A DNA stretch of 64,000 nucleotides, from the sequence record PP712906.1; one strand, 5' to 3'. A program made the translations under genes and the position numbers. The notes beneath the pieces were generated by a model, which did no database searches, was not told the origin of the DNA, and saw only the letters and a list, made by a program, of their open reading frames with translations. This document shows positions 8,024 to 63,015 of this stretch, in pieces. Within the stretch, counting starts at the first letter, position 1. Each line of letters begins with the position of its first letter.

Positions 8024-8031
8024 TATAAATA
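8024..8031 (+). promoter_or_regulatory. T4-type late promoter
   Basis: Exact TATAAATA, 25 nt upstream of the ATG at 8057. Confidence 0.8.
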
Positions 8032-11965: not shown

Positions 11966-12484
11966 ATGAAAATTATATTCTTGGATATTGACGGCGTTCT
12001 AAACAATGCTTTAGAAGCCGATGAGCACAAGGACGTGCTACTTAATGGTGAGTATCAGGGGATTTATTCTCCTCGATGCGTAGACCGCTTAAACGATCTC
12101 GTTGAAATGACTGACGCACGCATTGTCCTTACCAGTGTGTGGCGTTGTGGTCTGTCAATTGATGAGATCAACACAGTGCTTCGAGCCATGGGAGTCAACG
12201 CTGAATGCATTGGTAAAACCGATATGCTCGATCACAAATACTCATGGGCGTTTCGTGGCAATGAGATTCTTAAATGGATTCATGACAACGAAGAGCTTAT
12301 TGGTAAACGTAGATACGAGTATCGAAGCTATGTCATCTTAGATGATGACACTGATATGCTGTTATGGCAACGTCATAACTATGTAAACTGCGACCCTGAG
12401 ATTGGCATGACTGATCGCGTGGTCGCAAAAGCTGCTGCAATACTGAATAACGCACCTTGTACCGATACTGGTCAAGAGTTTTAA
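11966..12484 (+). CDS. HAD phosphatase, Swiss-army-knife RNA repair type (HAD_SAK_2-like)
   Basis: KIIFLDIDGVLN, IVLTSVWR, RGNEILKWI and YVILDDD. Confidence 0.82.
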   Translation: MKIIFLDIDGVLNNALEADEHKDVLLNGEYQGIYSPRCVDRLNDLVEMTDARIVLTSVWRCGLSIDEINTVLRAMGVNAECIGKTDMLDHKYSWAFRGNEILKWIHDNEELIGKRRYEYRSYVILDDDTDMLLWQRHNYVNCDPEIGMTDRVVAKAAAILNNAPCTDTGQEF

Positions 12485-12490
12485 AAGTAG

Positions 12491-12518
12491 TTGACACGCA
12501 CAATAAAAGATGTAATAA
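12491..12518 (+). promoter_or_regulatory. early promoter of natV
   Basis: AAAAGTAGTTGACA followed by a TAATAAT region, as in the other early promoters. Confidence 0.6.
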
Positions 12519-12557
12519 TCTAATCTCAATCAACAATGACAAAATGGGGAGCCCAAC

Positions 12558-13583
12558 ATGTCACACGCAATCTTTATCGGACGTTTTCGTCCATTCCACA
12601 ACGGTCATCTATCTGCAATCACTCAAGCATTCGACGCTCTTGACCTAGACAAGATGACTATCTTAATCGGTAGCTCTAACCGACATCGTTCAGTTAAAAA
12701 CCCATTCGTGTTCGAAGAAGTACGCGATATGATGGGTGTTGCATTGCCTGATCACATTCGAAGCAAAGTTCGCTTTGTTCCGCTTGGTGATTACGCGAAA
12801 GACGACGTTTGGCAGTCAAATGTTCGTTCTCGTGCAAGAGGCGCAACTCACATCGTTGGTTACGACAAAGACGAAAGCAGCTACTACCTCAAGCTATTCC
12901 CTGAGCTAAAGCTATTTCAACCTGAACCAGTGAAGATGTATAACAAAGTTATCTCTGCAACTGACTTCAGAGAACTGTACTTCAGCGAGATTCTACTGAA
13001 TCACCCTGTAATGTCTGGTCTTATCCCTAAAGAAACGATGATGTTTCTTGATAACTGGAGCAAAACAGAGTTTTTCACTGAAATGAAAGCTGAATACGAT
13101 AGCTCAGTGCGCGAAATCGAGAAGTTTAAAGACTATCCTTACCAAGGTCACTTGAATATCGCGTGTGCTGATAACGTTGTTACGTGTGCAGGTCATGTTC
13201 TTCTTGTTGAGCGTAAGTTCAACCCAGGCAAAGGCTGTTTAGCATTACCTGGCGGGCATAAGCATGAGAAAGAAACATTCTTAGATGCTGCGATTCGTGA
13301 ACTGCAAGAAGAAACTAATATCAAAGTACCTGAAAAAGTACTGCGTGGCTCGCTTGTGGGTGAAAAGATGTTCGATAATCCAAATCGCTCTTACCCTCAC
13401 ACTCGCATCACAATGGCATATCACTTGAAAGTGCAGCCAAACCCAGACAACACTTTCCCGAAAGTGAAACCTGCTGATGATGCTGTATCAGCGAAATGGT
13501 ATCCACTGAGTGAAGTGCGCGACATGCAAGAACGTTTGTATGACGATCACTACCAAATCATTCAGTATTTCACTGGCATCTAA
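12558..13583 (+). CDS. natV: bifunctional NMN adenylyltransferase / ADP-ribose Nudix hydrolase (NadM-Nudix)
   Basis: IGRFRPFHNGH and SATDFRE; Nudix box LPGGH..E....DAAIRELQEET; ADDA..AKW and DDHYQII. Confidence 0.93.
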   Translation: MSHAIFIGRFRPFHNGHLSAITQAFDALDLDKMTILIGSSNRHRSVKNPFVFEEVRDMMGVALPDHIRSKVRFVPLGDYAKDDVWQSNVRSRARGATHIVGYDKDESSYYLKLFPELKLFQPEPVKMYNKVISATDFRELYFSEILLNHPVMSGLIPKETMMFLDNWSKTEFFTEMKAEYDSSVREIEKFKDYPYQGHLNIACADNVVTCAGHVLLVERKFNPGKGCLALPGGHKHEKETFLDAAIRELQEETNIKVPEKVLRGSLVGEKMFDNPNRSYPHTRITMAYHLKVQPNPDNTFPKVKPADDAVSAKWYPLSEVRDMQERLYDDHYQIIQYFTGI

Positions 13584-47388: not shown

Positions 47389-48084
47389 ATGAAAAAGCTC
47401 GTACTTGTAGCTGCCGCTGCTGTAGCTCTTGTTGGATGTGGTGATTTGCCACGCCTGGAAACTAAGACAGACAAGAAATTCACCACGGTTAATGCAGTTG
47501 TGAACAAAAAAGAGCGTGAAATGATTAACTACTGGATGGCAGATGCTGACGGTAGTAACTATCTTTACAACAAGCTTTGGACTGCTCTTGCTACTCGTAA
47601 CAAATACGGTTCTAATGCTGTGCGTCGTTCAGATGATGAAGTTCCGTTCTGTGATGTCATTGTAGCTCTTGCTAAATCTGAAGAAGATATTCGAAGCACG
47701 TACGAGCGTACATTTAATAATCAGTGGCGAACTCAATACGGCATTAGTCTTAATCAGCAATGTGGCTATACTCCACCAGAAACACTCGAAGAGCAAGCAG
47801 AGCGCGTTGAGAAACTTGAAATGCAAGCTGATTTGAAAAAGCGTGAGCAACAAGCACAGAGTATTGAAACGCTTGATGACGTTGCCGACGCGACGACTGA
47901 GCTACTTGATCCGCATGAGTACGACTATCTGATCGAATCGGCACGCGAGTGTAATCGAGCCAAAACCAAATTGCTTGAACTAACGCAAGCAGGCAAACCT
48001 TTGACACAAGCTGACGGCTCAGATGCACGTAAGCTAATTATCGAATGCAAAATGCATAAACTTGAAGTTGAATTGAATAAGTGA
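47389..48084 (+). CDS. lipoprotein, paralog of 59929-60648
   Basis: Lipobox LVGC; shared VPFCDVI, QW..QYGI.L..QC, CNRAK and KLEVELNK. Confidence 0.8.
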   Translation: MKKLVLVAAAAVALVGCGDLPRLETKTDKKFTTVNAVVNKKEREMINYWMADADGSNYLYNKLWTALATRNKYGSNAVRRSDDEVPFCDVIVALAKSEEDIRSTYERTFNNQWRTQYGISLNQQCGYTPPETLEEQAERVEKLEMQADLKKREQQAQSIETLDDVADATTELLDPHEYDYLIESARECNRAKTKLLELTQAGKPLTQADGSDARKLIIECKMHKLEVELNK

Positions 48085-48091
48085 GAAAAAC

Positions 48092-48874
48092 ATGTTGAGA
48101 ACAAATATTGCGATTGAAGAACTGAAAATCCGAATGCATCCGTTCGATCAAGTTGCGAACGCAAACAACGACGATAGCTCAGTTCGCGACTGGCGCCAAA
48201 TCCCTGACGTTGCTAATGACAATATCTTGAAGAACTCGGTTCTACCGTCGTGGGTAATTCGAGAGTTTCACTGGCGTGATATTTCATTCAATCAACCATC
48301 AATGGGTGATCTGCCCGTTGAGTACAAAACAGAAGCAGGTGAAATCGGTAAATGTCAATCGCATTATCTCGGTGAACTTGATGATTGCAAGTTCTGGCGC
48401 CCTGATATTGTATCTTTGAATGCTCAATTCATTGATTCAAAAGACGTTGATAAAGCACTTGCAGAATTGCAAGCCGTTGATGTGTTTGACGCTTCACAAG
48501 GATTCGCTGACGGTCGACCTGACCCGGTTAGTCACAATGAACACGGTATAACCGATGATGAGCTTGAAGCTGCAATCGTCGAAGCTGAAATGGCAGCGGC
48601 TGTGGATGCTTTAAAAGTTGAGTCGCAATCGTTGTTCGATCCAGATCATGTTTATTACATGAATGAAAAGTATTATATTATCGGTGACGATCCGTTTGAC
48701 GAAAATTACTGCTATGCGTTGAATGCTGCAAAATACCCACAGCGTATTGCAAAATCCCAACTCGTAACCGATGAGCAATACAAAGAAGCTGAAGTTTTGA
48801 AGAATCAGTTCCCGCAGATGTGGACTGCTCAAGATTACGCAAAGCTTGCTAAGTTCATTCGCAGCAAAAAGTAG
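48092..48874 (+). CDS. acidic hypothetical protein
   Basis: 260-aa ORF. Confidence 0.75.
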   Translation: MLRTNIAIEELKIRMHPFDQVANANNDDSSVRDWRQIPDVANDNILKNSVLPSWVIREFHWRDISFNQPSMGDLPVEYKTEAGEIGKCQSHYLGELDDCKFWRPDIVSLNAQFIDSKDVDKALAELQAVDVFDASQGFADGRPDPVSHNEHGITDDELEAAIVEAEMAAAVDALKVESQSLFDPDHVYYMNEKYYIIGDDPFDENYCYALNAAKYPQRIAKSQLVTDEQYKEAEVLKNQFPQMWTAQDYAKLAKFIRSKK

Positions 48875-48880
48875 TTTCCG

Positions 48881-48911
48881 ATGCGGGTTGTTACGACATC
48901 CCGCATAAATA
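48881..48911 (+). promoter_or_regulatory. hairpin abutting a late-promoter-like CATAAATA
   Basis: ATGCGGG-T-TGT-TACG-ACA-T-CCCGCAT; CATAAATA at 48904-48911 is one mismatch from TATAAATA. Confidence 0.55.
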
Positions 48912-48943
48912 GTTCTATATGGACTAACAAGGAAATTACGACA

Positions 48944-49474
48944 ATGCCAACTCCTACAACAGGTGCGATTTCAATCGGTACCGTTCGTGATTATTTCAGT
49001 AGAACCGGCGCTGCTTCATTGTCTCAGTACTACAGAGGCGGCGGTATTGTTCCTGATATTACTGAAAATGCTCACGTACCAACTTCAGGCGCGATTAGCT
49101 TGAATGACTTGCGCGGTGTATATCGCTTGTCAACGTATACGACATCATTTACGACAACATACAACACCACTGTATCAACATCGAATACGACTTCGCGTAG
49201 TACATCAAGAAGTACAACTAGAAGTACTGCATACAGTACAACTCGCTCGACTGCGTATACTACTAGTTGGACAACTAGCCGAACTACGTCGGTGACTAAA
49301 GGTTCGTATTCGACATCATACACGACTTCTCGTGCTACATCACGTTCAACATCATATAGCACGACACGTTCAACAGCTTATACGTCTACGTGGACAACAT
49401 CATGGACAACCACGTACAACACAACAGTATCAACATCAAACACAACTTCGCGAAGCACGCAAGTTGCAGTTTAA
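48944..49474 (+). CDS. Thr/Ser-rich fibre/adhesin-like protein with tetrapeptide repeats
   Basis: AAGGA RBS and ATG at 48944. N-domain with two GAIS motifs, then 13 + 13 [YWFRVN]-[STN]-T-[STA] repeats around VTKGS. Confidence 0.85.
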   Translation: MPTPTTGAISIGTVRDYFSRTGAASLSQYYRGGGIVPDITENAHVPTSGAISLNDLRGVYRLSTYTTSFTTTYNTTVSTSNTTSRSTSRSTTRSTAYSTTRSTAYTTSWTTSRTTSVTKGSYSTSYTTSRATSRSTSYSTTRSTAYTSTWTTSWTTTYNTTVSTSNTTSRSTQVAV

Positions 49475-49486
49475 CAGGGTTAAATT

Positions 49487-49705
49487 ATGAGCTACAATGA
49501 AGAACACGAGAACCGAATCAACGAGCTTGAGAACAAGGTTTCAAAGCTTGAGTCGATAATTGAAAATCTGGTCGAGTCAATGACTTCGAACAGCGAAGCT
49601 ATTATCGAACATATTGCATCACTTGAGACCGAGAGGGATTCGATTCTTGCATCATATGATGACAAACTTAATGAGATCGTGACCAAATATGAACCCAAGC
49701 AATAG
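49487..49705 (+). CDS. small coiled-coil protein
   Basis: Heptad pattern INELENKVSKLESIIENL. Confidence 0.75.
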   Translation: MSYNEEHENRINELENKVSKLESIIENLVESMTSNSEAIIEHIASLETERDSILASYDDKLNEIVTKYEPKQ

Positions 49706-50543
49706 AGAAATGACTGGGTTCAATAACATTTCTCGCACCGGTAAGTTGAAATTACAATCCGATGCAGACAACGTCCGTGCCATGTGTATGGACGTTGTTC
49801 GTTTATTGAACTCTAAAAATATACCATCTAACTTCGACATCAATCACAATGACGGTGGTAACATCGGCGTGCATGAATGGGTGTCACAAATCCGCTTCAT
49901 TCACTTGAAATACATGAACGTTAATTTCCAAACGAAGATTTTCAAGCATGCCTATCATAACACTGAAAACGTCGTTGACTATTTTGACACGTTCAAACAT
50001 TCTGACAAATATCATCTATCAGCGAAGCCTAGATTTTTAGAATATGAAAACGTCGTATTTCTATGTGGATCGAATGTACTTGAATTGGCAATTGACTTTG
50101 ACAAGATTGATACGCTGGTCGAACATTATCCCGATTTAGTGATCAAACCACACCCGATTACGACGCTGTATTACATCAATATGCTTAAAACTCGATATGG
50201 ATCGAAGCGCGTGCTTTCTCAGAAGATCAGCGGTGTTGATGTTCTTAAATCTGCTAAACGTGTTTGGCTACCTTCAACGTCTGAGTTCTGGTTTAGTGCC
50301 TTGAACTACGACAAAGAAATCGGGTTTATCTCTAAAGATGGTTTCTGTGGAACGTACACGTCAATCATCAACGCAGTATGGGAATTGCATGAAGAAACCG
50401 GTGATCCATTGAAAGATATTGTGAATAAAATTATCTCGTCACCTTACTCAGGTCTGTATGGTAGTATGGCAGACTTTGAAGAGCATCACGAGAAATACTG
50501 TAATGTGATTCTAGAACTAGGGGGTAATTTCGATAATGTATGA
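49689..50543 (+). CDS. KpsC/KpsS-like (GT-B) polysaccharide transferase
   Basis: LVIKPHP motif, then LKSAKRVWLPSTSEFWFSALNYDK, the typical layout of beta-Kdo/capsule-modification transferases. Confidence 0.6.
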   Translation: MNPSNREMTGFNNISRTGKLKLQSDADNVRAMCMDVVRLLNSKNIPSNFDINHNDGGNIGVHEWVSQIRFIHLKYMNVNFQTKIFKHAYHNTENVVDYFDTFKHSDKYHLSAKPRFLEYENVVFLCGSNVLELAIDFDKIDTLVEHYPDLVIKPHPITTLYYINMLKTRYGSKRVLSQKISGVDVLKSAKRVWLPSTSEFWFSALNYDKEIGFISKDGFCGTYTSIINAVWELHEETGDPLKDIVNKIISSPYSGLYGSMADFEEHHEKYCNVILELGGNFDNV

Positions 50544-51168
50544 TTATGTAATTCACACTTCGATTAGTGACAAAAGTCAGCTAAACCAACTAGTGATGTT
50601 TGTCGGGTCTTTCATCGAGACGCACAAAAAAGGTCGCGTGGTCTGCGTGACTGATCTTGAACTTGATTTCACGATGCCTCGACTGTCATTTGAGAAAAAA
50701 CTACCCGAAGAGTACGTTTTCATTTCAGTTGACAATCTATTTTTACAAAAAACATACGGCGTTGTTAGCTACATTGACAGTGGTACTTGGCGATGTACTT
50801 GGCAAAAGAATGATCATGATGATTTCGTCATTAAAAAGCATGGCGAAAGAAGCGGGTTGATTCACCCTGATATTGCAATTGCAAATTACAATGTTTCGAG
50901 ACATGGCGATCTCGACATGTATTACAACGCGCTTCGTTACATTGAGAGCGCAATCACGATCAACTGCAAAGACTTTGCCCCTGCTGCTGAGAATAAAATC
51001 AACAGCTTTTACACGCTTGTATTTCCATGGGAGATTTATTTTCACGTTATGATCACTTACCAAGAGTATATTGATTCTGAATACGTTGAGCGAGTTCGCG
51101 CTAACTGTCATAAGTTCGCACACTCGGTTTATTACAGAAAATCAGGGTTGTTACGTGATGGGTTATGA
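50536..51168 (+). CDS. divergent GT-A-like (nucleotide-sugar transferase) protein
   Basis: QLVMFVGSF..., VCVTD, FISVDNLFL resemble the GT8-type layout; weak. Confidence 0.35.
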   Translation: MYDYVIHTSISDKSQLNQLVMFVGSFIETHKKGRVVCVTDLELDFTMPRLSFEKKLPEEYVFISVDNLFLQKTYGVVSYIDSGTWRCTWQKNDHDDFVIKKHGERSGLIHPDIAIANYNVSRHGDLDMYYNALRYIESAITINCKDFAPAAENKINSFYTLVFPWEIYFHVMITYQEYIDSEYVERVRANCHKFAHSVYYRKSGLLRDGL

Positions 51169-51841
51169 TGAGATAATTTTAGTATCTGGTCTTGATAGTT
51201 TAGTTCTATATGAATTTCTTGAACGAAAGCCACACCCTGTTTACTTTAAATGGGGTTTTGCTATCGACGACATTGAAATGGCTGCTTTGCCTGAAGAAAC
51301 AACTATCATAGAAATGCCAGAGATTTTGCATTTGAAACATGATCCGTATGAGTTCAAGACACCAAGAAATCCCGATTTAATTGGTCGGAATACGTTGATG
51401 TTTAACTCAGTTTTCCATGCATTCAGACCAAACGTAATTTATCGCGGGATGTTGAAAGGTGATGATTTCTATTACGACGCATCGCCTACGCATTCAGATG
51501 AAATCGCAGCTATGTGGTCGAAAATGCTGAATAAAGAGTGTCGAATTGAACAACCGTTTAAAGACAAAACGAAACGTGACATAATGCAAATGGCGGTCGA
51601 ATACGGTATTGATGCGAATTCATTACAGCATTGTTACAATCGAGAACACAACTGCGGTCGATGTAGCAAGTGTGTGGATGCACATGTTAATTCTATGTAC
51701 ACCGACAACCCAGACATCATGTGGCTGAAACGAATAGTTAATGACTCGGGTATGGCATCATTGGCTAATCACATGTTTGGTGTTGATACAGTTGACAGAA
51801 TAAAGGAATTTCTAGATGAATTTGATCGAACAGACTGCTGA
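51158..51841 (+). CDS. QueC-like PP-loop ATP pyrophosphatase with Zn site
   Basis: ILVSGLDS, GRNTLM, YYDAS, PFKDKTK.DI and HCY...CGRCSKC. Confidence 0.8.
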   Translation: MGYDEIILVSGLDSLVLYEFLERKPHPVYFKWGFAIDDIEMAALPEETTIIEMPEILHLKHDPYEFKTPRNPDLIGRNTLMFNSVFHAFRPNVIYRGMLKGDDFYYDASPTHSDEIAAMWSKMLNKECRIEQPFKDKTKRDIMQMAVEYGIDANSLQHCYNREHNCGRCSKCVDAHVNSMYTDNPDIMWLKRIVNDSGMASLANHMFGVDTVDRIKEFLDEFDRTDC

Positions 51842-52709
51842 TAAATTCGAGCATAGTTACCGAGAAGACGTTCAAGGCGTACAGTGGTATTTCGGTAGTC
51901 GAACGCATGATTTTTATCTGTATGGAATAGACTCTCTTATTGATAAAGTCAAAGACTGTGATTTTATTGAAATCAAGCATGTTCAAGAGGGTACGCTGGT
52001 TAAACGAGGCGAAGCTGCGGTCACGGTTACGATTACAGATCATAGTCGTATCGCATATGGGAACATGATTGAAACATTGTTGTACAATGAGTTGTGGTAT
52101 TCGAGCACGGTCGGTACGATTTTACACCGTTGTCTTGATGTGTTGCATGAAAACGGCTATGACGCTCGTTCAGCATACCCTCAAATCGGACGGGCGAGTT
52201 CAACGCCAGAACAGTCAGCTAAAGCAAGGGATGTGTTCGCACGTATATTTTATCAATCGTCGAATGAGAAAATACCCGTTGCGATGCACAGTGATATTTT
52301 AATCAACGGTGAGGAATATTGCATGGAACATTATAACGGCATCATGATTGATACTTTCGATAAGCAAGCTTGCATTGACTTGATCAACAAGAAAGACTTT
52401 CGAGGGACTGTGATGGTTGACTCTCAGCCAATAATTGAAACAATTGAGAGAGTTCTAGCTGAAACAAAATGCTTTGTTGCACAAGCTGAAAGTGTTACAC
52501 TCGATGAGTGGATAGAGATAGTGCGACATTTTAAAGGCAATAAGCGAATTTTCTACGGGATTGGTAGCTTTGCATTTAGCAATATATCACGAGACACATT
52601 TGGTTTGATTTACAAAGTGTGTGCAGTTAAGAAAAACGACAACTGGATCGGAGTTTCAAAGATGACGACAGGTAAACAAACATCGGCTGGTTATAAGGTT
52701 ATAGGTTAG
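51816..52709 (+). CDS. divergent, shortened Nampt/NAPRT-family phosphoribosyltransferase
   Basis: Aligns by eye to nadV in this window: HVQEGT vs AVKEGT, IETLL..LWYSSTVGT vs LETFI..LWYPTTVAT, MHS vs EHS, IDTFD vs MDSYD, RDT..K vs RDT..K. Confidence 0.8.
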   Translation: MNLIEQTADKFEHSYREDVQGVQWYFGSRTHDFYLYGIDSLIDKVKDCDFIEIKHVQEGTLVKRGEAAVTVTITDHSRIAYGNMIETLLYNELWYSSTVGTILHRCLDVLHENGYDARSAYPQIGRASSTPEQSAKARDVFARIFYQSSNEKIPVAMHSDILINGEEYCMEHYNGIMIDTFDKQACIDLINKKDFRGTVMVDSQPIIETIERVLAETKCFVAQAESVTLDEWIEIVRHFKGNKRIFYGIGSFAFSNISRDTFGLIYKVCAVKKNDNWIGVSKMTTGKQTSAGYKVIG

Positions 52710-52711
52710 TT

Positions 52712-53701
52712 ATGAATTATTGTATAGCGCCGTTTACATCGCCGTCTATTACACCAGACGGTTTTAAAATTTGCAGCATGCCAGGTCAGAAAGTATACCC
52801 TGATATTTCATTCTGGAATAGTGATGAAGTGATCAAGATTCGCGAACAGATTATCGCTGGTGAAATTCCTGAATCGTGCAAGGCATGTCGTAGTATGCGT
52901 GACGGGTTGATTGTGTCAAAAGAAAAACCAACTGATACTCATGTTGACTTGAATTTCAAAGCTCTTTACATTGCGCGGTCGAACAAGTGTGAATATGCTT
53001 GTGAAATGTGCAGTTCATCAATCTCACATAGCTATGACAAGAAATACAATGACGGTAAGTTGGGGATTATTGAGAATGACTTTGATGTTATTCCGTATCT
53101 GCACGAAACACAAGCCGTTGCTATTTCGGGCGGGAACCCTGTCATTGACAAAAAGGTTGCAGAGATTCTTGAGAATCTAGACCCTGACGTGGTAGAACGT
53201 TTCATTATTACTTCAAATGGGACAGTCTTTCCAGACAGATTCTTGAATGCAATTAAGAGATTGAAATGTGACGCGACTTTGATATTCTCTATGGACGGAC
53301 CGAAAGAGTTTAATGAAGTGGTTCGATCTGGTGCGAAGCAAGAGAGAATCTATCGCACCATTAATCGAGTTCTTGACGAGATTGAAGATTACCCAAACTT
53401 GCATGTGGCAATTGAGTATACTTTCACGAATAAGTCAATTCATCACTACGTTGATTTGTATGATGAAATGCTCTTCGAGATCAACCCGAAGCATTTGAAA
53501 AACAACTCAGTTAAAGTGATTGCGAATATGTGTACATACCCGCATCACCTTAGCGTTACAACTGTTCCCAAAACCGTCATTGATGACATATTGTTCAATC
53601 AGTTGCCGTATTTGAGACAGCAACCCAGCCCATTGTCAAATCAATTCAAACTTGGCTATGATAAGTTTTTGACTCAGTATCACAACAGCGTGATTATGTG
53701 A
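52712..53701 (+). CDS. radical SAM enzyme with N-terminal SPASM/twitch-like domain
   Basis: C..PF...C...WNS..IRE..G..P.SCKAC; SNKCEYACEMC; SGGNP; TSNGT; SMDG. Confidence 0.9.
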   Translation: MNYCIAPFTSPSITPDGFKICSMPGQKVYPDISFWNSDEVIKIREQIIAGEIPESCKACRSMRDGLIVSKEKPTDTHVDLNFKALYIARSNKCEYACEMCSSSISHSYDKKYNDGKLGIIENDFDVIPYLHETQAVAISGGNPVIDKKVAEILENLDPDVVERFIITSNGTVFPDRFLNAIKRLKCDATLIFSMDGPKEFNEVVRSGAKQERIYRTINRVLDEIEDYPNLHVAIEYTFTNKSIHHYVDLYDEMLFEINPKHLKNNSVKVIANMCTYPHHLSVTTVPKTVIDDILFNQLPYLRQQPSPLSNQFKLGYDKFLTQYHNSVIM

Positions 53702-54818
53702 TCAGATCATACGCTTTGATATGTGAGTAAAACTCTGGACACGCAGACGATAAATTAGTTTTCGTCTTCGTGTCTATTCTTTTGTTAAGAACAAAGAATT
53801 CAGGGTTGAATTTACAAACACTGTGTTCCAGAGTAAGACATTCAGCAACGTGTTTAAATGGTCTAGCCAAATCCTCACGCCCATCTTTTAAATACGCTTC
53901 TTCTTTCACTTTGAATCTTGATAATAGCTGGTCTCGAAATGCAACTGGAATGTTGTAAATTGAGTATGGATTATCAGGCTCACCGACGACATGCACAGAC
54001 AAACGTACACGTTTACCATCATAAAGCGAATCAAAATCTGAAACCAATGTTTCAAGATGTTCAAGAGTCACGTTTGACACGGTCGCAGTGATAACTACAT
54101 CAAAGTGTTGCTTGATGACTTCAATGTTTGATTTGACTTTTTTGATGTCTGCAAACAATCGAATATAATCTTGGTATTCTCGTAGACCGTCGATTGATAC
54201 GAACACCGTTGATGCATTAGCTTCTTTAAGCGATTTGATGAGATCTGAGCCATCGGCTAACACTAGTGATGAGCCATTCGTGAAAATATTCACTGCGGCT
54301 TTAATGTCGCCTACGTTGCGAAGAACTTCAGGAGCATTTGACGAGCGGGTAATTTCACCGCCTAGAATTGTCAATGACGAAAGTCCTTTGCTGATTGTGT
54401 TGATTGTCGTACTCAAATCATTGAATCGAGTACTTGAATCTTCTTCATTGAACAATCTAGCCTTCAAGTCTGATAATTTGCTGTAGCAGTAACGACAAGC
54501 TTGATTACATTCATTACTAGGGAATACTTGTAGCCAGCGAACTGAATCAGCGGGCATAATAGGTGAAACTTCAGAATCGTGTTCTGTTAGACGCTGTGGG
54601 TCATTATCAGTAATGCACATTTGACATGCCTTTGACAGCTTGCTCATGTCGTGGTTTAGCATTGCTTCACGATAAGCGACAAGCTTTTCATCATTCCAAG
54701 CGTCTGCTAGTGTTTTTTCATCAGTAAACCATTCATAATCAGCCGAACAGCAAAACGTAATTTGATTGTTTGCTCGTGTGATGAACTGCTTGAACGGCAT
54801 ATAACATAGTGGTTTCAT
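53694..54818 (-). CDS. radical SAM enzyme with N-terminal SPASM/twitch-like domain
   Basis: C.MPF...FCC...AWND..REAM..CQMC; SNECNQACRYC; LGGEI; FTNGS; SIDG. Confidence 0.9.
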   Translation of the reverse strand: MKPLCYMPFKQFITRANNQITFCCSADYEWFTDEKTLADAWNDEKLVAYREAMLNHDMSKLSKACQMCITDNDPQRLTEHDSEVSPIMPADSVRWLQVFPSNECNQACRYCYSKLSDLKARLFNEEDSSTRFNDLSTTINTISKGLSSLTILGGEITRSSNAPEVLRNVGDIKAAVNIFTNGSSLVLADGSDLIKSLKEANASTVFVSIDGLREYQDYIRLFADIKKVKSNIEVIKQHFDVVITATVSNVTLEHLETLVSDFDSLYDGKRVRLSVHVVGEPDNPYSIYNIPVAFRDQLLSRFKVKEEAYLKDGREDLARPFKHVAECLTLEHSVCKFNPEFFVLNKRIDTKTKTNLSSACPEFYSHIKAYDLIT

Positions 54819-54828
54819 GTTTCTGTCC

Positions 54829-55401
54829 TTAGTTAAAAATGCTACTTGTATATATAGCAGTCTTCAGGGCATTGAAATGATCGTCAACTCTATTCACGTG
54901 TATGCATTCAATGTCAAATCTTTCTTGGATTTCTCGGATGTTGTCTAGTGAGTCGTCGATGAAGTATTTCACCTCATGCAGTTCACACAGCTTCTCGACA
55001 TACTTTGCCTTCGAGTCGAAGTACTCAATCGAAATCACCTCACTTATCATCCCTGGGAATAACGCATTTAGATTATACACGCGATTTGACCATGAAGTTC
55101 TACTCATGCTGAACTTGGTTAGTGCAATGATGTTATATCGGTCTGAGAGTTCGCGTAACGCATCGTAAGCGTCTTCATATGCGGGTATGTACTTTGCACA
55201 CTCATGTTCATTGTATGCGCCTATAAGCTTTCCTAGTTGCATGTCACTCACGTTAATAAATAAAGAGCGTGCATCGGTATCAGTATTTGAACCGTTGATA
55301 TTCAAATTATCAAGCATGCCTAATTGCATCATGAAGAATGGCAAGTTGGCTTTCCAGTTAAGCAAAACCCCGTCTACATCTATGATGATCGTCTTTTTCA
55401 T
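54829..55401 (-). CDS. HAD hydrolase, T4 gp30.2-like
   Basis: IIIDVDGVLLNW...LPFF; NR.YNLNALFPG; FIDD. Confidence 0.8.
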   Translation of the reverse strand: MKKTIIIDVDGVLLNWKANLPFFMMQLGMLDNLNINGSNTDTDARSLFINVSDMQLGKLIGAYNEHECAKYIPAYEDAYDALRELSDRYNIIALTKFSMSRTSWSNRVYNLNALFPGMISEVISIEYFDSKAKYVEKLCELHEVKYFIDDSLDNIREIQERFDIECIHVNRVDDHFNALKTAIYTSSIFN

Positions 55402-55442
55402 TACTACCTCGAAAAAAATTAAAATTTTTCGAAAAAAAGTAT

Positions 55443-55470
55443 TGACACTTAGTTTCGTTCATGTAATACT
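55443..55470 (+). promoter_or_regulatory. early promoter
   Basis: TTGACA followed by TAATACT, preceded by A-tracts (UP-like). Confidence 0.65.
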
Positions 55471-55534
55471 TATCTCAACTTAACGAAACAAGTTAAACAA
55501 ACAAGACAACATTTAATCAAAAAAGGAAATACAC

Positions 55535-55771
55535 ATGAAAAACTTCAAATCAATCGCAACTGCACTTCTTCTAACTATGACTTTCTCTGCTGGTGCTTTC
55601 GCACACGGCTCAGGCGGTACGCTAGGTGGTAACCTTGGCATCGAAATGTGCAAAATCGGAGCAATCAACTGCGGCTTCCCTAAACAAGAAGTTAAAGTTG
55701 AAAAAGAAGCACCAAAAGCTGAAAAGGCTGAGGTGAAAGAAGTTAAGCTGGCAACTGATCTGACAGCTTAA
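55535..55771 (+). CDS. small exported protein
   Basis: Signal peptide ending AFA; mature HGSGG...CKIGAINC; own promoter and terminator. Confidence 0.8.
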   Translation: MKNFKSIATALLLTMTFSAGAFAHGSGGTLGGNLGIEMCKIGAINCGFPKQEVKVEKEAPKAEKAEVKEVKLATDLTA

Positions 55772-55775
55772 TTGA

Positions 55776-55801
55776 AATGTGCAGATTCGTCTGCACATTT
55801 T
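55776..55801 (+). terminator. intrinsic terminator
   Basis: AAATGTGCAGA-TTCG-TCTGCACATTT-T. Confidence 0.9.
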
Positions 55802-55870
55802 GTTTAATAACGACTCACCAAGACATATACTAAAGTCTCACACAATCAAGCATAAAATGGGAGCCATACA

Positions 55871-59928: not shown

Positions 59929-60648
59929 ATGAAAAAATTAATCGCAATCGTAGCACTAGCAGCATCAGTAGCAATGACTGGTTGTACTGACACCATCGAC
60001 AATTCAGCAACTGATCAGCTAAAAGCAGCTATGCCAGTTCTTTCTCAAACTGAAAAAGATATGCTGAATGTATTCGCTGCTCCGAACTTCTTGAGCCGTT
60101 ACGACAACATGTATGCAGAAGTGGTCAAAAATCGCGTACACTTCGGTCAGAAGCCGATTCCACGAGCAGATACAGAAGTGCCTTTCTGTGATGTAATCGA
60201 CGCTGTAATCGCAGCAGAGCGAGAAAACAATCTAACAGAACGTGATTACTCACTGAGCAATCAATGGAAGCTGAAATACGGCATCACACTTCTTGAGCAA
60301 TGTAATCAATCAGACCGTGCTCGTATTGAAATGCAGGTCGCGAAAGCAAAAGCCGATGCCGAAGCAGCTAAAGATCGCGTAGTCATCGAAGAGCAAGAAT
60401 TCAGCAAGAAAGAAATCAAAGCTGAGAAAATCATCGAAGACACAGTTGTAATCAAAGATGATGTTCTACTATCACCTGAACTTGTTCGCGAACTACGTGG
60501 TTCAGTTAAAGACTGTAATCGAGCTAAAGTCAAGCTAATGAGTGTAGTCGATGCTGGTGAGCAACTAACTACAAAGCACTATGACGAGGTGAAAGGTCTA
60601 GTTCTACAGTGTGAAATGTTGAAACTAGAAGTTGAACTCAACAAATAA
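59929..60648 (+). CDS. lipoprotein, paralog of 47389-48084
   Basis: Lipobox MTGC; shared Cys pattern. Confidence 0.8.
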   Translation: MKKLIAIVALAASVAMTGCTDTIDNSATDQLKAAMPVLSQTEKDMLNVFAAPNFLSRYDNMYAEVVKNRVHFGQKPIPRADTEVPFCDVIDAVIAAERENNLTERDYSLSNQWKLKYGITLLEQCNQSDRARIEMQVAKAKADAEAAKDRVVIEEQEFSKKEIKAEKIIEDTVVIKDDVLLSPELVRELRGSVKDCNRAKVKLMSVVDAGEQLTTKHYDEVKGLVLQCEMLKLEVELNK

Positions 60649-60692: not shown

Positions 60693-61745
60693 TCAATTTA
60701 CCATTTTGATTTGAATTTGATTGTCCATGTAAGCCATTTTCTTTTCAAATTCAACATCATATTCTGGTCGATGTTCGTATTCGACTGAAAGCATTTGCTT
60801 CAGACAACGGTACAATTCCGACTTGTAATACCCTTCTTTCATTCCCTTCATCTGTTCATATTGCTTTTTCATAGCAGCTTTGATTATCTTCGGGTCCATG
60901 AATTTGATTGACATTTCTCGCGGTGCTTTTACTGTGCCAAAGTCAACAAACACCTGAGCCTTTTCAGCTACTTGAATGAAGTCATAAATCGTGTCATAAC
61001 TCATTCGACTTAGCGTGTGGTGCATACAAACATGTTTGCTATGTTCTTTTAGCAACGGTACATTTGCAAGCATCAAGTCGTGGTCGATGTTCTGACGAAT
61101 GTATTCGTTGCGCTCTTTTCCGCCGTCACATGAAATTGTAAACACTAGACGATGTTTGTACTTTTTACATATGGCTAGAATCTTCTTCGCAAGTGGCGTA
61201 TGCAACACAGTACCATTTGTCAGAATGTAAACTTCCGCATTTGTTTCTTCCATGACTTCAGTCAGAACTTCGACTGTTCTCTTGTCCATGAACGGTTCGC
61301 CGCCGTATAGCACAACAGTTTCAACACCCTTCGGGATACTGAAATCGAGTTGTGTGTAATCGTAGTGGTCGTCAATGTCATACAAGTCCATGTATGTTTT
61401 GCTATTCTTGCCATAGCACATTCGACACGCTAGGTTACATTTGTTTGACATCAATATTTGAATTGTTCTAGGATGCTCTTCGAGTGCTTCATATTCGAAG
61501 TACTTCTGATCAGACAATTCGCCATAACTCATGCATTCTTTGCAGTATTCTGGTAAAGTGTCATACTCAAACATTTTGGCACGATGTTCATTGATTATGT
61601 CACTGTGCCACCAGTCTTCAACGTTCGGGAATGGTTCACTTAGCTGAGAACAGCAAATGTGATACCCATCCGGTTTTGCGTCACGTGTATTAAAGGGAGA
61701 GCCACAAAGTGGTCTCTTCCCGTCTTTAAATCCGAATTTATCCAT
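60693..61745 (-). CDS. radical SAM enzyme with N-terminal SPASM/twitch-like domain
   Basis: C.SPF...ICC...WWHS..RAKM...PEYCKEC; SNKCNLACRMC; YGGEPF; LTNGT; SCDG. Confidence 0.92.
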   Translation of the reverse strand: MDKFGFKDGKRPLCGSPFNTRDAKPDGYHICCSQLSEPFPNVEDWWHSDIINEHRAKMFEYDTLPEYCKECMSYGELSDQKYFEYEALEEHPRTIQILMSNKCNLACRMCYGKNSKTYMDLYDIDDHYDYTQLDFSIPKGVETVVLYGGEPFMDKRTVEVLTEVMEETNAEVYILTNGTVLHTPLAKKILAICKKYKHRLVFTISCDGGKERNEYIRQNIDHDLMLANVPLLKEHSKHVCMHHTLSRMSYDTIYDFIQVAEKAQVFVDFGTVKAPREMSIKFMDPKIIKAAMKKQYEQMKGMKEGYYKSELYRCLKQMLSVEYEHRPEYDVEFEKKMAYMDNQIQIKMVN

Positions 61746-62017
61746 TAATCTAGCTCATCAAGAAGTGATTGAAATTCTTCGTCGCGTTCAGCGTCGATTG
61801 TACCAGTCATCAACTCTGTTAGAGTCTTCAACGACTTGATCTCTGGTGGTTGAGGGCGTAGATCTTCGAGAATGTGAATGATTGACTCGACCGGGAGATC
61901 GTGATTTACAATCTCGTCTGGCAGGTGGTGTTTGTAAACGCAGTCGTCGCCCCAATCAATAACTACTGCATGTTCCCATTTGTCGATTTCTAGTATTTTA
62001 AAATTTGGTTTCATCAT
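61745..62017 (-). CDS. small acidic hypothetical protein
   Basis: ATGA/TAATG-coupled between the GT and the radical SAM gene. Confidence 0.75.
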   Translation of the reverse strand: MMKPNFKILEIDKWEHAVVIDWGDDCVYKHHLPDEIVNHDLPVESIIHILEDLRPQPPEIKSLKTLTELMTGTIDAERDEEFQSLLDELD

Positions 62018-63015
62018 AAGCCCCAGAGTTCTTTCCAATGTGTTTTAGCATCTTGTCGATACTTCTCAATGTCAAATTTTTGATATTTCTGTTCGATTGC
62101 ATCATCAATGACGCGGATCAACGTATCATTGTTTATATCAGCACGAATCACTGGGAAAATAAAATCCCTTGTGTAAGGTGCGTCATGCTGAACAATACAA
62201 GGTATGTACTGACATGCTTCTAATAACGCATATGGCATAATCTCGATTCTAGACATATGAAGCAAAACTTTACTTTTCATCATATGTGCTATGACTCGCT
62301 CACGCCGCTGACAAGTTTCGACTATACAATCAACACCATTCGGGATTCTTATTGGTTCGGTTGTGAATAGACGAATTTTAAGACCGCTGTATGCAAGCGC
62401 GTTTAGCATTTCGGGTATCTGCTTACGTTTGTATGCACCTGACACGATAATCACGTCAGACGCTTCAGCAGCGTCAATATCAGCTTGTGATATAGACGGA
62501 AGCTCAAATGGTTCAAATGCAGTCACATGTTTGCCACCAATTACTTCTCGACCCCATTGTGCAATCCCGTTCGATTGAGCAATGTTAGTGACTAATGACG
62601 TTGACATCATGTGTCGCCATTGAGGTAAGTTGTAAATTTGATGAATGTCCATGTATTCGCGATATGAATCTGGTACTATCAAGTCACCGAAATGATGTTG
62701 GTTGTAACAACGGCGCTTCGCTTCGATACATGCGCGGAGTGCTTCATATGAATGCGTGTAGATAATCGCTTCGCTATCAATCGCGTTGATAACCATTGCG
62801 TTTGCCTTGTAGTCTTTATAAGACCGTTTCGTTAAAATGAAGTCACACCCGAAATCCCATTTGCTCACGTGTGGACACGATTCGTCTCCGAGTACAATAA
62901 CTTTGACATCACAGTTTAGTGATTGCATTAAACGAACGTGATCTTGAATGAATGTGTAAATACCGCCGCCAATTCCCAACATAAAGTCAGTTACTACGTA
63001 GCGAACTTTTTTCAT
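62014..63015 (-). CDS. GT-B glycosyltransferase (GT4-like)
   Basis: N-terminal GGGIYTF; C-terminal S..EIMPYALLEA (Ex7E) motif. Confidence 0.8.
   Translation of the reverse strand: MKKVRYVVTDFMLGIGGGIYTFIQDHVRLMQSLNCDVKVIVLGDESCPHVSKWDFGCDFILTKRSYKDYKANAMVINAIDSEAIIYTHSYEALRACIEAKRRCYNQHHFGDLIVPDSYREYMDIHQIYNLPQWRHMMSTSLVTNIAQSNGIAQWGREVIGGKHVTAFEPFELPSISQADIDAAEASDVIIVSGAYKRKQIPEMLNALAYSGLKIRLFTTEPIRIPNGVDCIVETCQRRERVIAHMMKSKVLLHMSRIEIMPYALLEACQYIPCIVQHDAPYTRDFIFPVIRADINNDTLIRVIDDAIEQKYQKFDIEKYRQDAKTHWKELWGL

Follow-up and report, generated by a model that had tools for sequence, protein, structure and literature searches.

The question raised by this locus is what a Vibrio phage makes with a tight block of eight genes (g0254-g0261) in which a small threonine/serine-rich protein is encoded together with a QueC-like PP-loop enzyme, a minimal phosphoribosyltransferase (PRTase) and radical S-adenosylmethionine (SAM) enzymes. 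The block lies in a stretch of 64,000 nucleotides (nt) of sequence record PP712906.1, here called the window, and all coordinates count from the first letter of the window. Over positions 48800-55500, the window matches Vibrio phage TCU-VP03-AIR1 with 100% identity at the equivalent coordinates, and it is nearly identical there to Vibrio phage KVP40 (131143-137843), in which the block corresponds to KVP40.0254-KVP40.0261 and is adjoined by the T4 30.2-like KVP40.0262 (g0262). In the public records, the block genes carry 'hypothetical' or generic labels throughout; nadV, a NARP2 gene for the salvage of nicotinamide adenine dinucleotide (NAD+), is located ~0.5 kb beyond the block.

An earlier reading of the letters and open reading frames (ORFs), here called the sequence-only reading, had seen in this region an operon that tailors a fibre-like protein. 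We are confident that a trio of genes, encoding a small fibre-class protein (g0254), a QueC-like enzyme (g0258) and a Nampt-like PRTase (g0259), and its link to phage fibres are real. Tentatively, we suggest that the block would covalently modify the small, late-made tail-fibre-class protein g0254 through the ligase and the PRTase, with a Vibrio-specific elaboration.

Recurrence of the trio in uncultured phages

The 297-amino-acid (aa) sequence of g0259 was searched with phmmer against 1.84 billion representative proteins, which returned 33 hits. Outside the cluster of the query, the only members of its clade were P0006, P0007, P0009 and P0010, and the PRTase clade thus comprises five clusters in this collection; the remaining hits were ordinary Nampt/NadV proteins and one protein (P0008, 1877 aa, 3.7e-35) that was rejected as a tandem-repeat artefact, with 33 copies of a unit of ~57-60 residues.

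Four of the five lineages of the PRTase clade are phage-borne, and in these the PRTase gene is close to a QueC-like gene, just upstream of which a small fibre-class protein is encoded. Tail or tail-fibre genes surround or adjoin this set in the three uncultured phages. In contig L016 (Logan ERR13834960), two giant Peptidase_S74 fibre genes are followed by a gene for a 291-aa anchor-domain protein with a Gly-rich tail, the QueC-like gene (37% identity to g0258), the PRTase gene (39% identity to g0259) and a tail-collar-domain gene. In contigs L019-L021 (four Logan runs, including the 2-kb fragment L022), a 1211-aa Peptidase_S74 fibre gene is followed by genes for a 178-aa anchor-domain protein, a QueC-like enzyme, a 288-aa radical SAM enzyme, the PRTase and a second QueC-like paralog. 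In L018 (ENA ERZ25068043), the order is capsid/adaptor genes, a 676-aa protein with tail-repeat motifs, a 272-aa Gly-rich protein, the QueC-like enzyme, the PRTase and a Phage_Tail_Tip gene. The 272-aa protein (L018_272) matches PHROG 2056 ('tail fiber protein; host specificity', 3e-20), and the 291-aa protein (L016_291) matches PHROG 2056/11439 ('tail fiber') weakly.

No homologues of g0255, g0256, g0257, the twitch radical SAM family or g0262 were found in the contexts of L016, L018 and L019/L021; because these accessory families are absent there, the trio is regarded as the conserved system and the rest as vibriophage additions. The sequence-only reading had proposed co-occurrence of these families in marine phages as a check, and in other phages it was found for the small fibre-class protein, the QueC-like enzyme and the PRTase, but neither for the glycosyltransferase-like genes nor for radical SAM enzymes of the twitch family. 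Its tie of the enzymes to a fibre-like protein gained independent support in three unrelated phages, whereas the glycosyltransferase and radical SAM genes that it had included are not part of the conserved core.

Pattern scans of IMG/VR, JGI metagenomes and GTDB with g0258, two PRTase alignments (A2 and A7) and P0006, P0007, P0009 and P0010 returned KVP40 only, and a tblastn search of 50,697 phage records with P0009 and P0010 revealed no cultured carrier beyond the Vibrio group. Word-index protein searches yielded two clusters for g0258, two for g0256 and five for a nine-member QueC-like profile. The radical SAM gene of L019 (8183-9049; phage of Logan SRR236844xx) belongs to another family than those of the block and is weakly RlmN/Cfr-like (purine C-methylases). 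P0007 (L017 10001-10912) stands alone in a bacterial contig of 60% G+C content, with genes for a transposase, a group II intron reverse transcriptase and DUF4238/DUF4365 proteins nearby.

Core enzymes

The QueC-like label of g0258 was confirmed at the level of superfamily membership only (Pfam PF06508, 36.6 bits, cut-off 22); against the equivalog TIGR00364 it scored 28.7 bits (cut-off 150.3). Canonical QueC motifs are SGGxDS, YxQxHxxE, VPxRN and YPDC (PMC13329287). In the g0258 family the loop reads x(S/G)GxDS, YxQxHxxE is absent, and of the canonical motifs GR and Y-x-D/E alone remain; in view of this loop, the missing motif and an equivalog score far below cut-off, g0258 is not expected to be a preQ0 synthase. 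Residues without variation in the family are the PP-loop G-x-D-S, one Gly-Arg pair, one Pro, one Lys, and the four zinc-site Cys with a further Lys; Tyr/Phe-x-Asp/Glu is also conserved. The zinc site (C160, C167, C170 and C173) is invariant in nine sequences, with a first spacing of 6 in KVP40 compared with the canonical C(x)8CxxCxxC.

All nine sequences, i.e. g0258 and eight relatives, match the PADLOC model for Cap9 (PDLC00911), a protein of the CBASS anti-phage systems, over its full length (2.2e-13). Searched against the PDB, the family profile retrieved Cap9 (9nto_B, 7.7e-12) just ahead of QueC (2pg3, 1e-10), and for the single KVP40 sequence Cap9 was the only match. In Cap9, R86, Y115 and D117 hold the conjugated deazaguanine (bioRxiv 10.1101/2025.04.06.647259), and the g0258 family keeps Arg, Tyr/Phe and Asp/Glu at the matching positions. 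No match of g0258 to the NAD or nicotinamide mononucleotide (NMN) synthetase families was obtained in Pfam and NCBIfam scans, and no CD-NTase, TGT-like Cap10 or Cap11 was detected among the block genes and their neighbours (Pfam, NCBIfam, PADLOC) or in L016, L018 and L019. Elsewhere in its genome, KVP40 encodes a canonical QueC (KVP40.0124), FolE, QueD, QueE, QueF and DpdA2 (PMC8056088).

The label of g0259 as a Nampt-like PRTase also held, by Pfam (PF04095, Nampt/NadV, 28.5 bits, cut-off 20.8) as well as by fold and invariant residues; against NF006629 it scored 63.5 bits (cut-off 405). The structure model (predicted local distance difference test, pLDDT, 92.9) superimposes with template modelling (TM) scores of 0.79-0.82 on NAMPT and ~0.8 on Namat (9w5x/9w5w), which is the nearest solved sequence relative. 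Nine residues that are invariant over 26 Nampt-family sequences (R29, H158, D179, D202, R259, D260, K267, K282 and K287) are all kept in g0259, including the catalytic (phospho-)His position. The protein aligns to residues 84-419 of the NadV of the KVP40-type phage itself with large deletions (297 aa compared with ~470-500). In this alignment, g0259 seems to have no counterpart of the Nampt loop whose Asp recognizes the free carboxamide, and the deletion of this loop would make room for a substituted amide. An Adps (PRPP-synthetase/Prs-like) partner was found neither in the block (Pfam, NCBIfam) nor in the L016, L018 and L019 contexts.

The small fibre-class protein

The longest ORF of g0254 begins at 48881, whereas the annotations of phages QD01 and 6E35.1a begin at the equivalent of 48944; the latter is most likely the start, because the longer ORF crosses a leader hairpin and the two annotations agree. 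The Thr/Ser hairpin protein proposed earlier was borne out: Ser and Thr make up 66% of a region of 114 residues, in which two arms that mirror each other (repeats at 49129-49203 and 49384-49458) are joined by a Lys-Gly turn. The repeats are also rich in Arg, which comes up at about every fifth residue. The tip of this hairpin (49290-49300) holds the sole lysine among the 176 residues of g0254, a candidate modification site; Lys-Gly or Lys-Ser-Gly is conserved at the tip in all five vibriophage lineages (including the L004, L005, L006 and L008 homologues), and two flanking Cys in three of the five. The residue after Met is small in g0254 of every lineage. No signal peptide or lipobox is visible in the sequence. 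The RAST label 'cell wall mannoprotein' was rejected, the similarity being merely compositional.

The N-terminal domain of g0254 (~60 aa, the anchor domain) carries the motif (P)(S/T)G-x-IS-x-x-D-x-(R/Y)G twice, and has homologues in small proteins of Xanthomonas, Stenotrophomonas, Ralstonia, Burkholderia and other phages; a PDB profile search with it gave chance-level matches only. In RTH11 and DLP_6, the genes for such proteins lie directly 3' of giant tail-fibre genes. The C-terminal parts of the homologues vary (Ig-like, Gly-rich and others). Two subtypes of the domain are homologous (hhalign 96.8%, E 2.5e-10), which links g0254 to L016_291 and L021_178, and anchor-domain genes precede the QueC-like gene in L016 and in L019/L021. 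By homology and conserved adjacency to annotated tail-fibre proteins, g0254 is classed as a predicted tail-fibre-class protein, and fibres and adhesins are usually built in this way, from a constant N-terminus and a distal part that can be exchanged.

In the vibriophages, the T/S-rich version of g0254 always accompanies the enzymes (35 records with, 14 without). This association fits a substrate encoded with its tailoring enzymes, but it fits equally the replacement of whole cassettes by recombination.

A virion proteome is available for phage 6E351A, in which VP6E351A_0310-0327 were all undetected; the gene set of that study left out the T/S-rich ORF (PMC12028318), and the proteome therefore cannot test the fibre idea.

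Promoter and leader of g0254

A late-like promoter had been proposed in front of g0254, and three observations support it, i.e. the placement of CATAAATA, variants of the motif upstream of structural genes, and a leader fold. NNTAAATA occurs only eight times on the plus strand of the window, CATAAATA upstream of g0254 being one of these, and its placement is for this reason unlikely to be due to chance. Fourteen upstream regions of KVP40 structural genes were read: four contain TATAAATA, and another six contain variants of NNTAAATA, e.g. TCTAAATA and AATAAATA, at positions -22 to -50. The TAAATA core of the g0254 motif is preserved in QD01, D484/6E35 and F86.

The leader of g0254 in the window folds with a minimum free energy of -28.6 kcal/mol (z = -5.1), and the equivalent leaders fold in QD01 (z -6.6), D484 (z -4.4) and F86 (z -2.2); no such fold was found in D479. 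A transcript that starts 3' of the motif would be without the masking arm. In T4, translation of e, soc and I-TevI is restricted to late transcripts, the late promoter of each being located within a hairpin that masks the ribosome-binding site; g0254 has this arrangement in common with them as read from its sequence, except in D479. Hence, g0254 looks late-expressed.

The sole exact TATAAATA in the window is at 8024-8031, ~26 nt 5' of an ATG with a good ribosome-binding site, and probably marks another late-type gene in an otherwise early region. Scans for sigma-70 promoters and terminators were rejected as uninformative, with the same counts in shuffled sequence.

The block in vibriophages

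The features of the locus are listed in Table 1. The seven overlapping or abutting plus-strand ORFs are real and as described earlier; from g0254 to g0260, the junctions are +12, -17, -8, -14, -26 and +2 nt. Likewise, the convergent radical SAM gene g0261 was confirmed to overlap g0260 by 8 nt.

Table 1. Features of the g0254-g0262 locus in the window
Feature	Coordinates	Strand	Remarks
Leader RNA structure	48871..48938	+	5' arm 48871-48879 pairs with the Shine-Dalgarno region 48930-38; late-type motif between the arms
Late-promoter-like motif CATAAATA	48904..48911	+	40 nt 5' of the g0254 ATG
g0254 (KVP40.0254), predicted small fibre-class protein	48944..49474	+	N-terminal anchor domain and T/S/R-rich mirrored hairpin
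g0255, 72-aa predicted coiled-coil protein	49487..49705	+	Vibrio-phage accessory; all five lineages
g0256, 284 aa, weak GT52/polysialyltransferase signals	49689..50543	+	Vibrio-phage accessory; invariant KPHP and SSE(M/F)W
g0257, 210 aa, no assigned family	50536..51168	+	Vibrio-phage accessory
g0258, Cap9-like QueC-family PP-loop enzyme	51155..51841	+	x(S/G)GxDS loop, invariant GR, Y-x-D/E, four-Cys zinc motif
g0259, minimal Nampt/Namat-like type II PRTase, 297 aa	51816..52709	+	Pfam, model fold
g0260, radical SAM enzyme, N-terminal Cys-rich (twitch-type) domain	52712..53701	+	
g0261, convergent radical SAM paralog of g0260	53694..54818	-	
g0262, T4 30.2-like HAD-fold protein, N-terminal DVDG motif	54829..55401	-	Co-inherited with the block

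In tblastn searches, the QueC-like and PRTase genes match the identical 35 phage records, all of Vibrio Schizotequatrovirus-like phages, and the N-terminal domain of g0254 likewise matches 35 Vibrio phage records. A further 14 related records contain the upstream gene g0253 and none of the trio genes (block in 35 of 49). The carriers fall into five lineages, i.e. KVP40; QD01/VS1/VS2; 6E35/D48x/K5xx; F86; and D479, all of which preserve the order of g0254-g0260, with 35-55% identity between the proteins. The block of D479 is set between different flanks and has one radical SAM gene displaced by 2 kb, being otherwise together. These data support the block genes as a co-inherited unit that is present or absent as a whole, and the earlier suggestion that they act as one unit is upheld in that they are colinear in five diverged lineages and are present or missing together.

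The slot between g0253 and nadV (48875-55870) is a site of cassette exchange in Schizotequatrovirus and Mylasvirus genomes (L012, L013, L014). It holds genes for a 177-aa anchor-domain protein and PagP in VH7D-type phages, and an anchor-domain FG-GAP repeat protein in nt-1; both slot proteins have the N-terminal domain of g0254 and different C-terminal domains. In K566/K567, it holds a lipoprotein gene, four twitch radical SAM paralogs, glycosyltransferase-like genes and pagP, and a 2025 pangenome study described replacement of the whole block in these two phages (PMC12028318).

Accessory and neighbouring genes

The gene for the coiled-coil protein g0255 is present in all five vibriophage lineages. 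For g0256, which had been labelled a KpsC/S-like transferase, only sub-threshold matches to sialyltransferase-type families were obtained (GT52 in one member, 19.5 bits against a cut-off of 26.1; polysialyltransferase in another, E 0.26), and the label is accordingly weak. The motifs KPHP and SSE(M/F)W are invariant in its homologues, and are presumably akin to the HP and SS motifs with which bacterial sialyltransferases bind CMP. A PDB profile search with g0256 gave chance-level matches only, and its AlphaFold model from three sequences was unusable (pLDDT 35). The 'GT-A-like' label of g0257 found no support: there was no significant match in Pfam, NCBIfam, PADLOC or the PDB, and PHROGs returned only its own family of unknown function. 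Both glycosyltransferase labels are therefore used here as weak, putative ones.

Both g0260 and g0261 contain CxxxCxxC and score above the cut-off for Pfam Radical_SAM. The best subfamily is the twitch family NF033640 (N_Twi_rSAM), at 118.6 and 127.9 bits (cut-off 170), so that of the earlier term 'SPASM radical SAM' the second part stands and the first is doubtful: the best fit, itself below cut-off, is to a twitch-domain family rather than to a C-terminal SPASM domain. A viperin-like reading was rejected, since the matches span the shared core only and are far under the cut-off. The D484 homologue of g0261 (L003 ~12241-13310) is broken by a single frameshift; the gene is intact in 6E35.1a, which is near-identical to D484, and in F86, and is absent from D479. 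This convergent paralog hence seems dispensable, being broken in one phage and absent from another.

Several further genes vary among the carriers. An extra gene for a 224-aa protein of no assigned family is located between the QueC-like and PRTase genes in 6E35/D48x and F86 (L003 9671-10342; L004 9668-10345; L005 11127-11753), and D479 has a distant relative of it after the 30.2-like gene. D48x and F86 additionally carry a 307-aa gene and a gene for a 435-aa MobA-like nucleotidyltransferase. In D479, the g0262 homologue sits directly 3' of the PRTase gene.

The sequence-only reading had also included a third radical SAM gene and a 'GT4' gene at 60.7-63.0 kb, which were rejected as parts of the unit, as both occur in the block-free phage nt-1. 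The third radical SAM gene (g0272, 60693-61745) is real and 89% conserved in nt-1, and because nt-1 has no block it is considered independent of it. The 'GT4' assignment at 62014-63015 was not recovered by the Pfam scan, although the KVP40 record cites PF00534. Among these neighbours, g0273 is 86% conserved in nt-1, and g0274 resembles K566_0307 (22%) and has no glycosyltransferase family in the Pfam scan. The genes g0252 and g0270 (47389-48084 and 59929-60648) are paralogs with ~33% identity; low counts of the g0252 homologue were recorded for virions of 6E351A (PMC12028318, Table S4).

Proposed function

The two characterised QueC-type ligases modify the N-terminus of a partner protein from their own system, i.e. 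CdnD in the case of Cap9 (bioRxiv 10.1101/2025.04.06.647259) and QatB in the case of QatC, and the base conjugated by Cap9 retains a free N9 that could later receive a ribose (same reference). Given that a partner-like gene lies upstream of the ligase gene and that a PRPP-type transferase is its constant partner, we propose a ligation followed by ribosyl-phosphorylation.

In a first step, g0258 would use ATP to adenylate a heteroaromatic carboxylic acid, most likely 7-carboxy-7-deazaguanine, which could be supplied by the FolE, QueD and QueE enzymes of the phage, or alternatively nicotinate. The former suits the residues of the ligase and the phage pathway, and the latter suits the transferase family and the logic of an amide. 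In a second step, g0258 would form an amide between the acid and an amine of g0254, either the N-terminus or the lone lysine at the hairpin tip. In a third step, g0259 would transfer ribose 5-phosphate from 5-phosphoribosyl 1-pyrophosphate (PRPP) onto a ring nitrogen of the attached base to yield a protein-linked nucleotide. In the Vibrio phages, g0256, g0257, the two radical SAM enzymes and g0262 might then elaborate this product or act on the Ser/Thr arms; the HAD-fold protein g0262 could strip the 5'-phosphate, and glycosylation is among the conceivable elaborations. The order of the steps, the identity of the acid and the roles of the accessory enzymes are all suggested on this basis.

Whether the fibre-class protein is the substrate is close to an even call, leaning slightly towards no. 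That phage particles would carry a fibre-associated protein with a covalent nucleobase or nucleotide of deazaguanine or nicotinamide type, made by the Cap9-like ligase and the minimal Nampt-like PRTase, is possible but rather doubtful.

Several observations weigh against a modification of the fibre-class protein. In KVP40, the block is located in an early-gene region beside nadV, away from the tail-fibre genes. Anchor-domain proteins occur without the enzymes in nt-1, VH7D, RTH11, DLP_6 and YL1, so that the anchor domain does not itself require them, and no N-terminal difference is visible between anchor-domain proteins with and without enzymes. To our knowledge, the characterised Nampt-family enzymes all use free pyridine bases, never purine-like or protein-bound ones. 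Just four independent phage lineages with the set are known, and the orphan P0007 has no QueC-like gene within 10 kb. Furthermore, the PP-loop of g0258 is without the first Ser of SGGxDS/SxGxDS, and a Cap9 double mutant in the first and last PP-loop Ser had lost defence (bioRxiv 10.1101/2025.04.06.647259). The modification itself is proposed from sequence comparison.

Alternative explanations

The core enzymes might instead make a free small molecule, chiefly in a second branch of NAD+ salvage or reconstitution in which the PRTase forms a mononucleotide from nicotinate or a similar base and the PP-loop enzyme amidates it; such a branch would complement NadV/NatV (NARP2) as a counter-defence, and a free 7-deazapurine nucleoside would be another form of the same idea. 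The block lies ~0.5 kb upstream of nadV and is co-inherited with a HAD-fold gene, the nearest solved relative of g0259, Namat, is a phage NAD+-reconstitution enzyme, and PP-loop relatives such as LarE use pyridinium carboxylate mononucleotides (PMC13329287). The 2025 pangenome study named VP6E351A_0314-0326 an 'ancestral anti-defense island' (PMC12028318), but this label is based on hidden Markov model (HMM) annotation alone. The vicinity of nadV is not repeated in the other phages: in L016, L018 and L019 the enzyme pair is situated among tail or tail-fibre genes, no NAD gene was seen in up to 10 kb of flanking DNA at either end (a shorter stretch in the 15-kb L019), and all four phage lineages encode a small fibre-class protein upstream. 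In addition, g0258 has the profile, base-binding residues and zinc site of Cap9/QueC and no NAD or NMN synthetase match (Pfam, NCBIfam), and the loop that reads the free carboxamide is apparently deleted in g0259 at the level of the alignment. We consider a free product unlikely, though deserving attention.

A remodelling of the host envelope (lipopolysaccharide, capsule or another glycan), e.g. to block adsorption of progeny or competitors, with the T/S-rich protein either unrelated or surface-exposed, would agree with what else is found in the slot. The lipid A acyltransferase PagP is encoded there in VH7D and K566, in K566 next to the lipoprotein, the four radical SAM paralogs and the glycosyltransferase-like genes; nt-1 has PagP just past nadV, QD01 has a heptosyltransferase-like gene nearby, the D48x group has added the MobA-like nucleotidyltransferase gene, and g0256 gives weak sialyltransferase-type signals. 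However, the trio recurs within tail and tail-fibre clusters without glycosyltransferase-like genes, g0254 has neither a visible signal peptide nor a lipobox, and QueC-type ligases and Nampt-type PRTases have no known role in glycan synthesis, which makes this explanation improbable.

A role of the enzymes in supplying phage DNA or tRNA with another 7-deazaguanine derivative, as an extension of the FolE/QueD/QueE/QueC/DpdA pathway, is quite improbable. Membership of g0258 in the QueC family, the modification of dG with preQ0 or preQ1 in Schizotequatroviruses (PMC12028318) and the part played by radical SAM enzymes in known deazaguanine chemistry are in favour, but the canonical QueC KVP40.0124 is already present elsewhere, nt-1 has dPreQ0 yet no block, and the block is without a DpdA/TGT-like gene. 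The score of g0258 is far under the QueC equivalog cut-off (28.7 compared with 150 bits), a PRTase yields nucleotides whereas transglycosylases insert free bases, and in other phages the genes have a tail/tail-fibre location. The DNA or cofactor modification that the sequence-only reading had named as its own alternative is regarded as less likely.

Finally, unrelated accessory genes without a common function may have gathered in a slot that is a swap site, several of them being without an assignable family, but this is very improbable given that five of the six junctions overlap or leave 2 nt, that gene order is preserved at 35-55% identity and in the different flank of D479, and that the trio recurs in three unrelated phages despite the five-cluster rarity of the PRTase clade.

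Comparison with known systems and significance

The preferred reading, i.e. modification of the fibre-class protein by ligase and PRTase, has its nearest parallels in Cap9 of type IV CBASS and in QatC of QatABCD, with which g0258 shares the minimal size, the zinc site, the base-holding residues and a specific partner protein. The phage system differs from these in that it is phage-encoded and not located in defence islands, has no CD-NTase, TGT-like Cap10 or QatA/B/D, and has a Nampt-like PRTase as partner and a tail-fibre-class protein as presumed target; g0258 itself differs in its x(S/G)GxDS PP-loop and a C-terminal extension of ~40 residues. Similarly, g0259 shares its fold (TM ~0.8) and the family-invariant residues with Nampt/NadV and Namat (of NARP2 and NARP1), a true NadV being encoded 3 kb downstream. 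It differs from them in having 297 compared with ~490 residues, with the first ~80 residues and several loops gone, in having no Adps partner, and in that its clade is always paired with a QueC-like enzyme, the orphan P0007 excepted.

The toyocamycin and sangivamycin pathways combine a QueC-type enzyme, a radical SAM enzyme, PRPP-dependent ribosylation of a deazapurine and a HAD phosphatase, a set similar to that in the block; they differ in using a type I PRTase and a QueE-type radical SAM enzyme, in yielding free nucleosides and in having no fibre-class protein. In the virion glycosylation of mycobacteriophages, phage tailoring enzymes are encoded beside a structural-type protein with an exposed Ser/Thr-rich region, as in the block, whose conserved enzymes are a ligase and a PRTase rather than glycosyltransferases.

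No published description of the module, of a link between QueC-like enzymes, phosphoribosyltransferases and tail fibres, or discussion of these KVP40 genes was found in the literature, which agrees with the earlier statement that no described pathway combines these genes. A 2026 survey of the QueC superfamily distinguished QatC, Cap9, LarE, PfkB-linked, WbpG-like and GMP-synthase clades, and the g0258 clade was not included (PMC13329287). The component families are known, whereas their combination, the viral origin and the fibre context are new.

The question is answerable by descriptive mass spectrometry and structures, as relatives of KVP40 are cultured and sequenced and natural block-free relatives exist. 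Protein-nucleobase conjugation by QueC-type enzymes was first described in 2025 and is known from bacterial anti-phage systems only. If the proposal is true, viruses too would use this chemistry; a conjugated base could be ribosylated, a step only suggested by the authors of the Cap9 study; and Nampt-family enzymes could be trimmed for a role outside NAD metabolism. Virions and fibres would then have a new type of decoration alongside glycosylation, and the KVP40-type phages would provide the first case of a virus that makes a nucleobase-protein conjugate for its own virion, mirroring the defence chemistry of type IV CBASS and QatABCD.

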